Virus record (IMG/VR): IMGVR_UViG_3300008261_000001
Location: 186,001 to 250,000 of that record
DNA: 64,000 bases
Direction: 5' to 3' (one strand)
The translations under genes were made by a program, and so were the position numbers. This document shows, one piece after another, positions 40,184 to 41,613 of this stretch (positions within the stretch are counted from its first letter, which is position 1; each line of letters begins with the position of its first letter). The notes under the pieces were generated by a model that made no database searches, had not been told where the DNA came from, and saw only the letters and a list, made by a program, of their open reading frames with translations.

Positions 40184-40723
40184 TTATTTGTCGTCATCTG
40201 TTTTGGGTATCCATTCGTTTATGACTTGGGGTAGGGTGACATCCTTTTCGCTTTTGGTCTTGATGGGGGGTTCACCGTTGACGAAAATGGATAGTCGGTT
40301 AATGACGGCATTTTGGAGTTCGAAGACTTGTTCGCGTAGGAGTTGCATTTGTATCTGTGCATCTCTCAGTCGGGCAATAAGTGCGGCTCTGTCTGCGTTA
40401 GCGGTGGCGAGTTTATCCTTTAGCTCTTCGACTTCGGAGGGGTCACGACCGCTTGCGATGGCGAGCATAGAGGATATGCTCCCTGTGAGCATCCCTATGA
40501 TGCCGATGAGGATATCCCTGTTTTGTTCTACGATCTGCACATAGGATAAGAAGATGATGAGTAGGACGATAAGGAGCATGAAGACCACGCTTGCCCACCA
40601 GCCCCTTTTTGCTTTTTCGGACTGAGTGAACTGCTTGTGGTTTGCGGATACGGAGTACGATTTTTGGTTGTCTGATTTTTGGTCGTTACCTGATGACCCA
40701 TTACCTGACATGAGCTTATTCAT
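40184..40723 (-). CDS. two-TM plus coiled-coil protein coupled to cyclase
   Basis: Two hydrophobic helices and a heptad region; ATGA overlap with cyclase stop. Confidence 0.75.
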   Translation of the reverse strand: MNKLMSGNGSSGNDQKSDNQKSYSVSANHKQFTQSEKAKRGWWASVVFMLLIVLLIIFLSYVQIVEQNRDILIGIIGMLTGSISSMLAIASGRDPSEVEELKDKLATANADRAALIARLRDAQIQMQLLREQVFELQNAVINRLSIFVNGEPPIKTKSEKDVTLPQVINEWIPKTDDDK

Positions 40724-41613
40724 TTAGTGTTCCTCTGTATTTTTGAGAGATATTGGATAAGTGCTTCGAGGTAGACTTTTAAGTCGTCTAACCAATCGAA
40801 GCCTTTGATTCCTAAAACATCTCTTAAAAATGGATATCGCAGTACATAATAATAAATGATAAAAATCCAGACGAGTACAGATAACTTTGAGAGCTTATAG
40901 TAGACGATGAGCATCCGTTCTTTGCGGGTGAGGTTGACCCAACGGACTTTGATTCCGGAGTGGGAGACCCTTTTAGCTTTTTCGGAGTCTGGTGGTGGTT
41001 TCAAGCATTCGAGGGTTTCACCGACTGCATAGATTTCTTGTGGTTGCCAAACACCTTTGAACTTGTATCTACCTACGCACACATATCTTGTACTTGGGGG
41101 AGTGTCTTTATTGGTACGGAAACGGATAACAGTCATGGCTTCTCTAGTAAGCAGAACTTGTCCTGCTTGGCAGAGGCTCATGGTTCTAGCTGCTATGTTT
41201 TTGGCTAGACCTTCTAGTTCTATGCGTTTGGCGTTGGCGGCAACCCATACATCGTCTTGGTGTACTTCTACGACTACATCCCAATGGATACCTATCCTTG
41301 CACCTATACCTGTCTTAGCAGGTATGGTTTTTTGATAGATAAGGGCGAAGTTTACAGCGTCTATTACATTCTCAAAGGAGCAAAGAAAGCCATCGGATCT
41401 GTCTATTTCTCTACCTCTAAATCTAAACAGAAGGGATCGTGTGGCTCTGTCGTGGTTTTGGAAGTGTAGAGCGGCATTTTTTGCCCCATGTTTTTGGACA
41501 AAAGCGGTGCTACCGATGAGGTCTAGGAGCAGAATGGCGAGCTTACGCTCGGTCATTTGTACATCTGCACCTACAGGCTTTTCTCCTTCAGTCCCTACAG
41601 GAAGGTTTTTCAA
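40720..41613 (-). CDS. class III adenylate/guanylate cyclase with C-terminal TM
   Basis: LDLIGST, REIDRSDGF, RIGIH, NIAARTMSLCQAGQVLLT, FKG. Confidence 0.88.
   Translation of the reverse strand: MKNLPVGTEGEKPVGADVQMTERKLAILLLDLIGSTAFVQKHGAKNAALHFQNHDRATRSLLFRFRGREIDRSDGFLCSFENVIDAVNFALIYQKTIPAKTGIGARIGIHWDVVVEVHQDDVWVAANAKRIELEGLAKNIAARTMSLCQAGQVLLTREAMTVIRFRTNKDTPPSTRYVCVGRYKFKGVWQPQEIYAVGETLECLKPPPDSEKAKRVSHSGIKVRWVNLTRKERMLIVYYKLSKLSVLVWIFIIYYYVLRYPFLRDVLGIKGFDWLDDLKVYLEALIQYLSKIQRNTK

Follow-up and report, generated by a model that had tools for sequence, protein, structure and literature searches.

A phage-encoded, predicted membrane-anchored nucleotide cyclase and its two-helix partner

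Pairing of a class III-fold mononucleotide cyclase with a small membrane protein is found in the Pycsar and Pucsar anti-phage systems of bacteria, in which the PycC or PucC cyclase is associated with an effector that is either a CNBD-TIR protein or a pJV1-spdB3-type protein (PycTM/PucTM) with three TM helices, a helical/beta cytosolic part and no classical cNMP-binding domain (preprint 10.64898/2026.08.12.744502). Other cyclases of relevance are the mycobacterial class IIIc adenylyl cyclases Rv1900c (LipJ cyclase domain) and Ma1120, and the TIGR04510 (mod_pep_cyc) 'putative peptide modification system cyclase' proteins with the related cyclase-TM-TPR and cyclase-STAND-TPR proteins, the 'immune clade 1' of the same 2026 preprint. 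On the membrane side, SLATT domains are two-TM effectors of nucleotide-based conflict systems, and holins and other small phage membrane proteins time lysis or exclude superinfection. Genes annotated as adenylate cyclases have also been reported next to curli (T8SS) genes in uncultivated pelagiphages, including both podovirus-size and myovirus genomes (PMC9599517).

The locus described here is found in a 64,000-nucleotide stretch (the window; positions 186,001 to 250,000) of the 290,179-bp IMG/VR virus record IMGVR_UViG_3300008261_000001, which is 93% complete. An earlier note, made from the sequence alone, had described a class III cyclase with an atypical context of the second Asp (IDRSDGF) and a C-terminal TM segment, overlapping by ATGA a two-TM coiled-coil gene and lying behind a TTTAT/hairpin element. 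The sequence features so described were confirmed, with the exception of TTTATA as a recurrent element. The features, in window coordinates, are as follows.

41615..41677 (-): hairpin in the 64-nt upstream spacer, including the Shine-Dalgarno sequence AAGGAGG (41622-41628) of the cyclase gene
40720..41613 (-): cyclase gene, 297 aa, TTG start 8 nt downstream of AAGGAGG
40951..41556 (-): class III cyclase catalytic domain (residues about 20-221), with D31 and D74 (metal), D71 and E132 (base-specifying positions), N139 and R143 (transition state), followed by the conserved PPxxSEKxKR linker
40843..40911 (-): single TM helix of the cyclase (residues about 235-257), preceded by a strongly basic stretch that places the catalytic domain, by inference, in the cytoplasm
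40726..40806 (-): C-terminal amphipathic helix (residues about 270-296), predicted to lie outside the cytoplasmic membrane, with the conserved P..R...GL motif at the membrane exit
40720..40723 (-): ATGA start/stop overlap of the two genes
40184..40723 (-): partner gene, 179 aa, with a disordered N-terminus, a two-TM hairpin, a predicted cytoplasmic coiled coil and a short conserved tail
40535..40603 (-): TM1 of the partner (residues about 41-63), preceded by the invariant EKAKRGWW
40448..40516 (-): TM2 of the partner (residues about 70-92), with the small-residue 'glycine zipper' G74xxG77xxxG81xxxS85...A90xG92, flanked by invariant NRD (outside) and GRDPSE (inside)
40280..40441 (-): predicted cytoplasmic coiled-coil helix of the partner (residues about 95-148), with many invariant polar residues (N109, D111, R112, R118, R120, D121, Q123, Q125)
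40036..40183 (-): spacer downstream of the pair, before the GlnII gene, with inverted repeats whose folding is not significant (z −0.94)

The assignment of the first gene product to the class III cyclases rests on profile and structure comparisons. With Pfam PF00211 alone the score is below the gathering threshold (19.1 bits against a cutoff of 21.9), but a family profile hits the Rv1900c and Ma1120 cyclase domains (E 1e-10, and E 4e-22 with a wider profile), and the AF2 model (pLDDT 88) superposes on them with TM-scores of 0.85-0.88, the top Foldseek hits being Ma1120, Rv1900c and CyaB (TM-score 0.78-0.88, E 6e-12). Rv1900c and Ma1120 are the best solved-structure matches by sequence profile and by fold. 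Sequence identity to them is only 22-24% and the domain context differs, but the metal Asp, Asn/His and Arg positions all align. Thus, D31 (in LLDLIGST) and D74 (in SDGF) correspond to the metal-binding aspartates, and N139 and R143 (in KNIAAR) to the His/Arg of Rv1900c, and the four residues are invariant in the phage family (more than 50 distinct sequences), in which the catalytic domain is the best-conserved part of the protein. The stretch GREIDRSDGF is invariant in 24 homologues, and the N-terminal MKNLP is shared with the closest homologue (P0002). The canonical base-specifying pair (Lys/Asp for ATP, Glu/Cys-Ser for GTP) is absent, since these positions are occupied by Asp71 and Glu132, against Asn/Asp in Rv1900c and Lys/Asp in Ma1120, with Asn in place of Glu132 in one subgroup. 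As a consequence the product (cAMP, cGMP or another 3',5'-cNMP) cannot be read from the sequence. The C-terminal TM segment is supported by a Kyte-Doolittle maximum of 1.88 for the 19-residue windows starting at residues 234-236 (spanning about 234-254) and by a model helix at 230-258. A hydrophobic segment is present in all homologues although its sequence is only 32% conserved. A second model helix spans residues 270-296, with R264 invariant and G268 at least 90% conserved, the topology being inferred from the positive-inside rule.

The cyclase domain is of the TIGR04510 type (E 1.7e-43, residues 26-215 on profile positions 7-204 of 814), but at 149 bits against a family cutoff of 400 bits, and with the protein ending at residue 297 with no TPR, the full-length architecture is lacking. 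The nearest cellular relatives are 40-45% identical and share the GREID(K/R)(T/S)DGF and E(V/L)EG(L/I)xK...AAR motifs and the PPxDSEKxxR linker, some also having a TM helix right after the linker. They are proteins of 400-1450 aa that carry TPR, nSTAND1, NACHT, AAA_16 or PEGA modules, from Burkholderiales, Lysobacterales, Acidobacteriota, Myxococcota and others, whereas the phage protein stops about 40 residues after the TM helix. In a tree rooted on canonical cyclases, which did not include PycC or PucC sequences, the phage and small TM-anchored forms make one clade (SH-aLRT 100) nested among the bacterial cyclase-TPR/STAND proteins. Asn139 occurs only in the cyclase subclade that has the partner, most cellular members having Pro at this position. 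The view in the earlier note that the enzyme is closer to the 'REIDK(S/T)DG...EGLAK' bacterial clade than to PycC is correct.

The partner has two hydrophobic segments (Kyte-Doolittle up to 2.93 in TM1) and AF2 helices at residues 34-61, 69-90 and 95-148, although the monomer model is of low confidence (pLDDT 61), too poor for a fold search. The core of the partner is 77% identical on average, against 72.5% for the catalytic domain and 32% for the TM/tail region of the cyclase, and the partner is 73% identical even where the cyclase is only 46% identical. TM1 is conserved on one face only, while TM2 is conserved all round (at least 95% in 57 distinct pairs). No cNMP-binding domain was recognised in it. 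It resembles the SLATT effectors in being a two-TM hairpin encoded next to a predicted nucleotide-synthesising enzyme. Its similarity to Pfam SLATT_fungal amounts to 17.9 bits for the window protein (cutoff 26.5) and to E values of 0.0012-0.1 in 21 of 23 members, all below threshold, confined to the TM hairpin and not independent because the members are near-identical in that region, and no bacterial SLATT family was hit. A search of PHROGs gave nothing for the cyclase and one weak hit of unknown function for the partner (phrog_9990, E 0.0023). A search of PDB sequences with the partner gave only chance coiled-coil hits at E about 1, and a protein atlas returned only the partner's own viral family. 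The partner was found only in viruses, being absent from the 185,579 species-representative bacterial and archaeal genomes scanned.

Conservation of the gene pair, which the earlier note had set as a test, was examined from both sides. The partner is adjacent to the cyclase in 77 of 77 informative loci found from the cyclase (76 downstream, 1 upstream), and the cyclase is directly upstream in 77 of 79 loci found from the partner. Of the two exceptions, the one whose complete 239.5-kb genome could be searched keeps an intact cyclase about 3 kb away, while the other locus ends about 100 nt past the partner. The junction ranges, in other loci, from overlaps of up to 57 nt to gaps of 3-129 nt, and no other neighbour family is present in more than 39 of 80 loci, ruling out a universal third gene. 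Thus, the two-TM neighbour is supported as a true, obligate partner, although more divergent phage cyclases (P0243, P0244 and P0312) lack it, so that the enzyme, if active, can work alone. Over 751 homologues of the cyclase and over 1502 of the partner were found (more than 750 and 1500 clusters at 90% identity), on 289 and 274 IMG/VR contigs, respectively. The two genes are thus inherited together in hundreds of aquatic phages, which suggests that phages run their own cyclic-nucleotide signal at the host membrane. The module is single-copy in complete genomes of 35-38 kb, where it lies between terminase (TerL) and portal, and of 312 and 375 kb, it occurs in phages of 239-375 kb, and the module tree splits by phage type. 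None of the contigs looked human, and no genetic code other than table 11 was needed.

The interpretation given in the earlier note, a phage cyclic-nucleotide signalling module with the Pycsar layout, is only partly supported. The module is phage-encoded, and its cyclase is class III and looks catalytically intact, but homology to Pycsar is not supported and the resemblance is an analogy. A possible common logic is that the cNMP opens an oligomeric membrane assembly. Neither protein hits a model of the PADLOC library, which to our knowledge includes Pycsar models, at E≤1. The clade profile scores E 0.34 against the one Pycsar cyclase found in the PDB (the 'uridylate cyclase' 8jsz), that is about 20 orders of magnitude worse than against the class IIIc adenylyl cyclases. 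The partner has two TM helices and a coiled coil instead of three TM helices and a beta appendage, and the cyclase is itself predicted to be membrane-anchored. The module, found in phage genomes only, evolves slowly, is vertically stable within phage lineages and behaves like a stably inherited phage gene pair rather than a swappable defence cassette. The roles proposed in the note (superinfection exclusion, lysis timing, host reprogramming) remain possible.

By taking these data into account, we tentatively propose that the two genes form a phage-specific, two-protein cyclic-nucleotide module at the host inner membrane. In this view, the cyclase domain was captured once from the 'heads' of bacterial cyclase-TM-TPR or cyclase-STAND-TPR proteins and lost their sensor parts. 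Having kept both metal aspartates and the Asn/Arg pair, it should be active as a homodimer, facing the cytoplasm and tethered by one TM helix with about 40 residues outside the membrane. The partner, a hairpin with both termini in the cytoplasm, would form a homo-oligomeric, channel-like assembly and would be the dedicated membrane partner of the cyclase, most likely the output that the cNMP, or the cyclase itself, switches, in order to change membrane permeability or energisation at a set point of infection, for lysis timing or exclusion of later phages. The fold, the catalytic residues, the descent, the strict co-inheritance, the restriction to viruses and the absence of a phage cNMP-binding domain (none was found in the 290-kb genome, nor was a second cyclase) are results of the analysis, whereas enzymatic activity, topology, contact between the two proteins, the oligomeric channel, the direction of control and the biological role are inferred. 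Complex prediction of cyclase and partner returned a score of 0.00, which counts neither for nor against binding. The step from glycine zipper to channel is by analogy only, and the poor conservation of the cyclase TM and tail argues against a specific TM-TM interface. Neither genomic position points to lysis, since in the window the nearest candidate lysis genes (Peptidase_M15_3, 45836-46279, plus a TM/coiled-coil protein) are 4 kb away, with six ORFs between the pair and the peptidase gene, and in the 35-kb phages the pair sits between terminase and portal. Furthermore, although small size, two TM helices, cytoplasmic termini, a charged cytoplasmic tail and plausible oligomerisation recall holins, these are usually far less conserved and the partner is coupled to a cyclase. 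An extension of the model, in which a possibly non-canonical cyclic mononucleotide accumulates during infection and gates a minimal, virus-only glycine-zipper channel (a 'cNMP-gated viroporin or holin') that sets the time of lysis or shuts the membrane to later phages, is not excluded but is doubtful on present evidence.

Alternatively, the partner may be a regulatory or scaffolding subunit, with a coiled coil that dimerises or gates the tethered cyclase, perhaps in response to membrane state, in place of the TPR/STAND sensor lost on capture, while the cNMP acts on host receptors (CRP-like regulators, cNMP-dependent enzymes) to reprogramme the infected cell. Class III cyclases need dimerisation, the cellular ancestors carry large sensor or oligomerisation modules that the phage form lacks, gene order and start/stop overlap suggest co-translation in fixed ratio, the partner has no recognisable nucleotide-binding domain, and the absence of a cNMP-binding domain in the phage would require a host-encoded or novel receptor. 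A GlnII glutamine synthetase gene next to the pair here, and within about 4 kb of it in the loci L017, L018 and L020, hints at metabolic take-over. However, the variable TM/tail of the cyclase fits poorly with a tightly co-evolving holoenzyme, a mere scaffold would not need an all-round conserved TM2 and an invariant polar coiled-coil surface, and a common host receptor is an extra assumption because the hosts of 35-kb and 375-kb phages probably differ. This reading is considered possible but less likely than the previous one.

A Pycsar/Pucsar-like abortive-infection or exclusion cassette, in which the cyclase senses a competing phage and its cNMP opens the two-TM effector to kill or depolarise the cell, is unlikely. 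It would agree with the layout, with the lack of a classical cNMP-binding domain also in PycTM/PucTM, with the weak SLATT_fungal similarity and with the fusion of the cellular relatives to STAND NTPases typical of immunity, but it is opposed by the differences from Pycsar given above, by absence of the partner from the cellular genomes scanned, and by the stability of the module, since defence cassettes are typically fast-evolving and patchy. Still less likely is a counter-defence or nucleotide-pool enzyme, merely localised by the partner, that makes a cNMP to jam or pre-empt host cNMP-based immunity or drains a particular NTP. The Asp/Glu pair leaves non-canonical products open and phages interfere with host nucleotide signals, but known phage counter-measures degrade or sequester signals rather than make them, the extreme conservation of the partner would not be explained, and no supporting observation was made. 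That the cyclase is an inactive pseudo-enzyme in a purely structural membrane complex, as the sub-threshold Pfam score and the non-canonical base-specifying residues might suggest, is the least likely in view of the invariance of the four catalytic positions and of the catalytic domain being the best-conserved part of the protein.

Cyclic mononucleotide cyclases paired with membrane proteins are known as bacterial weapons against phages, whereas here the same kind of pairing is a stable and widespread phage possession, built from a different cyclase lineage and a membrane protein found only in viruses. If the enzyme is active, phages make their own cNMP signal in infected cells of aquatic bacteria, a layer of infection control (timing, exclusion or host take-over) that, as far as we could find, has not been described. 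The partner would be a new family of very small membrane proteins, possibly nucleotide-responsive, and the descent of the cyclase would be an example of a phage capturing a domain from what look like host immune proteins. Literature searches on phage-encoded class III cyclases and on TIGR04510 found nothing specific, and an overview of jumbo phages (PMC7824862) does not mention such cyclases. With regard to the pelagiphage cyclases, neither CsgG nor FecR was found in the 290-kb genome and no curli gene recurs among the neighbours of the pair, which rejects a link to the curli cluster for this genome. Among BFVD viral structures only distant cyclase-fold proteins were found, at most 17% identical. 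No match was obtained by blastn of the region or tblastn of both proteins against 50,697 GenBank phage records, and the only informative phage relative of the genome is the uncultured 485-kb record LR745208.1, through its DNA polymerase (47% identity).

As to the sequences around the pair, TTTATA is not enriched in the genome (148 sites against about 225 expected), so that this part of the earlier observation could not be confirmed as a recurrent element. The upstream hairpin, of presumptive function only, has a folding dG of −18.1 kcal/mol (z −2.3; 3 of 200 shuffles fold as well). Stable hairpins also precede the cyclase in the close relatives L017 and L020, but not in L013, L035 or L023, and a small Cys-rich ORF precedes the cyclase in one branch only.

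The 290,179-bp IMG/VR virus record to which the window belongs (bases 186,001-250,000) is estimated to be 93% complete, and the window carries a family A DNA polymerase, a baseplate J protein and nine tRNA genes (Val, Asn x2, Arg, Leu x2, Met, Lys, Thr) at 220-294, 809-881, 10554-11282 and 46836-47344. The closest phage, as judged from the DNA polymerase, is the uncultured 485-kb record LR745208.1, at 47% identity. The genes of interest are the following.

40720-41613, minus strand: cyclase gene, 297 aa
40184-40723, minus strand: partner gene, 179 aa, overlapping the cyclase gene by ATGA

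The cyclase gene starts at TTG, 8 nt after AAGGAGG, and this start is supported by the N-terminal MKNLP, which is shared with the closest homologue. The 64-nt spacer upstream folds into a hairpin that includes the ribosome-binding site (dG −18.1, z −2.3), with similar hairpins preceding the gene in two close relatives, but not in more distant ones. The arrangement described in the earlier note, namely a class III cyclase gene with a C-terminal TM, overlapping a two-TM gene and lying behind a hairpin, was confirmed, with the exception that TTTATA was not found to be enriched in the genome.

Pfam alone scores the cyclase below threshold (19.1 against 21.9 bits). However, three other results leave no doubt about the presence of a class III cyclase domain: a profile of 24 homologues finds the cyclase domains of Rv1900c and Ma1120 (E 1e-10), which a wider clade profile finds at E 4e-22; the AF2 model is confident (pLDDT 88); and the model superposes on these structures with TM-score 0.85-0.88. 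From the HMM alignments, D31 and D74 are the two metal aspartates, N139 and R143 the transition-state pair, while D71 sits at the position of the substrate-specifying Lys (Asn in Rv1900c) and E132 at that of the specifying Asp. All of these residues are invariant in the family, although one subgroup has Asn at position 132. Therefore, the enzyme looks active, as inferred from sequence, but with a product that cannot be predicted. The domain is followed by a conserved PPxxSEKxKR linker, a basic stretch and one hydrophobic helix (Kyte-Doolittle 1.88; model helix 230-258), after which about 40 residues remain, with an amphipathic helix. By taking into account the positive-inside rule, the catalytic domain is inferred to be cytoplasmic, with the tail lying outside.

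With respect to the origin of the cyclase, NCBIfam places residues 26-215 on the cyclase part of TIGR04510, ‘putative peptide modification system cyclase’, at E 1.7e-43. An exhaustive search of 1.8 billion representatives returned only a handful of clusters of the short phage-type protein, followed by hundreds of proteins of 400-1450 aa whose N-terminal domain is 40-45% identical. Those examined carry TPR, nSTAND1, NACHT, AAA_16 or PEGA modules, some with a TM helix right after the same linker, and they come from Burkholderiales, Lysobacterales, Acidobacteriota, Myxococcota, Gemmatimonadota, Spirochaetales and others. In a tree rooted on canonical cyclases from three of those genomes, the phage cyclases, together with the other short TM-anchored forms, make one clade (SH-aLRT 100, stem 0.72) nested among the cellular ones. 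A 2026 preprint (10.64898/2026.08.12.744502) separates STAND-fused cyclases (‘immune clade 1’) from the Pycsar/Pucsar clade and, by its architecture-bearing relatives, the phage enzyme belongs with the former. In keeping with this assignment, the only Pycsar cyclase found in the PDB scores E 0.34 with the clade profile, and PADLOC finds nothing. The interpretation given in the earlier note was therefore supported only in part: the proposed affinity to a ‘REIDKSDG...EGLAK’ clade was correct, whereas the module is not a member of Pycsar, whose layout had been invoked.

The 179-aa partner begins with a variable, disordered N-terminus and an invariant EKAKRGWW, which precede TM1, conserved on one face only, and a 7-residue outside loop with invariant NRD. 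TM2 is conserved on all faces and contains a small-residue zipper (G74, G77, G81, S82, S84, S85, A90, S91 and G92, each at least 95% conserved); it is followed by an invariant GRDPSE, by a helix of about 55 residues with many invariant Arg, Asp, Gln and Asn, and by a tail with conserved PIKT and LP..V.EW.P. The only family similarity is a sub-threshold match of the TM hairpin to SLATT_fungal. No cNMP-binding domain and no solved relative were found. The protein was found only in viruses: all look-alikes in the protein atlas are viral, and no relative was detected in 185,579 species genomes or in GenBank phages.

The association of the two genes was examined from both sides. Starting from the cyclase, 289 IMG/VR contigs were found to encode a relative; of the best 80 loci, three end right after the cyclase, and all 77 others have the partner adjacent, in 76 cases downstream and in one (locus L058) upstream. 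Starting from the partner, 274 contigs were found, and in 77 of the 79 loci examined the cyclase is directly upstream. The two exceptions (loci L273 and L280) belong to one phage type. In its complete, terminally repeated 239,550-bp genome (G004), an intact cyclase, with the variant motifs GQLIDASDGH and RINLEG, lies about 3 kb upstream of the partner, separated from it by opposite-strand tail-fibre-like genes; the other exceptional locus ends about 100 nt past the partner, so that only its upstream side could be checked. No other gene family recurs in more than 39 of the 80 loci. A cyclase only 46% identical to that of the window still has a partner 73% identical, while still more divergent phage cyclases (29-38% identity) have no such partner and lack Asn139, which appears only in the partner-bearing subclade. 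In the large-phage branch (loci L025, L030, L035, L037, L042, L044, L063, L065 and L066, with the ORF ending at about 4997-5003, and L007, 5790-5996), a 68-101-aa Cys-rich ORF ends 1-5 nt before the cyclase start. It has a lipobox-like LLSC and a conserved C..A.D.I..C.GYRP...TPC.NI pattern, and may be a periplasmic third component, but it is absent in the window and in the 35-kb phages.

The partner core is the more conserved of the two in 80% of comparisons among 57 distinct pairs.

Mean pairwise identity among 57 distinct cyclase-partner pairs
Partner core (residues 33-148): 77%
Cyclase catalytic domain: 72.5%
Cyclase TM and tail: 32%

About half of the loci come from small phages, in which the pair sits between the large terminase subunit (sometimes with ThyX) and a Mu-like portal. 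Three such genomes are complete at 35-38 kb, large carriers are complete at 312 and 375 kb, and all have a single copy. A tree of the concatenated pair separates the small-phage context (31 of 33 in one clade) from the large-phage loci. Thus, the module has been resident for a long time in both lineages and is not shuffled frequently.

The data establish an intact cyclase of bacterial TPR/STAND-type ancestry, its membrane anchoring, an obligate two-TM partner found only in viruses and the lack of a cNMP-binding domain in the phage; what the module does with them, including enzymatic activity, contact between the two proteins and timing, is inferred. In this view, the cyclase dimer would make a cNMP at the inner membrane, and the partner, whose TM2 looks like the buried, small-residue helices of oligomeric channels, would be its dedicated membrane counterpart, although prediction of the complex gave no verdict on contact. 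It is tentatively favoured as the output, namely a change in membrane permeability or energization that times lysis or excludes later phages. The all-round conservation of TM2 and of the polar coiled-coil surface, along with the poor conservation of the TM of the cyclase itself, fits this hypothesis better than a tight TM-TM holoenzyme. However, the main alternative, in which the partner regulates or dimerizes the cyclase and the signal acts on host receptors, is nearly as likely. A Pycsar-type suicide cassette is less likely, by taking into account the clade, the slow evolution and the absence from bacteria.

No paper describing this family was found. A study of pelagiphages reports adenylate cyclases beside phage curli genes (PMC9599517), and no CsgG or FecR was found in the present genome. 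Cyclases with a small membrane partner are already known as an arrangement; the present module is classified as a further form of it, with a cyclase placed outside the Pycsar/Pucsar clade and a partner found only in viruses. It is not placed in full-length TIGR04510, nor in SLATT, similarity to the latter being limited to the sub-threshold match of the TM hairpin.

The surroundings of the pair in the window include the following features.

38989-40035, minus strand: GlnII-type (eukaryote-like) glutamine synthetase
41678-41857, minus strand: FmdB-type zinc-ribbon protein (59 aa, PF09723)
41857-42162, minus strand: 101-aa ORF
42163-42568: 400-nt stretch with no convincing minus-strand ORF
45836-46279, minus strand: Peptidase_M15_3 endolysin-like gene
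45171-45839, minus strand: 222-aa spanin-like protein

The glutamine synthetase lies directly downstream of the pair (NF041605 E 3e-139, just under the family cutoff), and a GS homologue is also found within about 4 kb of the pair in the related loci L017, L018 and L020. The zinc-ribbon protein and the 101-aa ORF precede the cyclase on the same strand but, among the 80 loci examined, recur only in the near-identical contig L012. The 400-nt stretch separates the 101-aa gene from a 373-aa gene, and the 228-aa plus-strand ORF 41879-42565, which overlaps the 101-aa gene, is probably spurious. The endolysin-like gene and the overlapping gene for the 222-aa protein, which has a PQ-rich linker, one TM helix and a long coiled coil, are a probable lysis pair, with no holin annotated nearby. 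The same minus-strand block also contains, at 35286-35972(−), 35969-36913(−), 43735-44055(−), 44072-44677(−) and 47383-47775(−), an intein splicing domain in a 228-aa ORF, a Vsr/DUF559-type endonuclease, a GIY-YIG nuclease, a C39-like peptidase and a NUDIX hydrolase. Finally, eight ORFs of otherwise unrelated length (about 100-370 aa), three in the window at 42569-43690(−), 38581-38901(−) and 32975-33745(−) and five elsewhere in the 290-kb genome, begin with the same 19-residue leader, MRTASEVLRSLEARIARLE, which could be a shared targeting, assembly or propeptide signal; two of these ORFs flank the cyclase pair.
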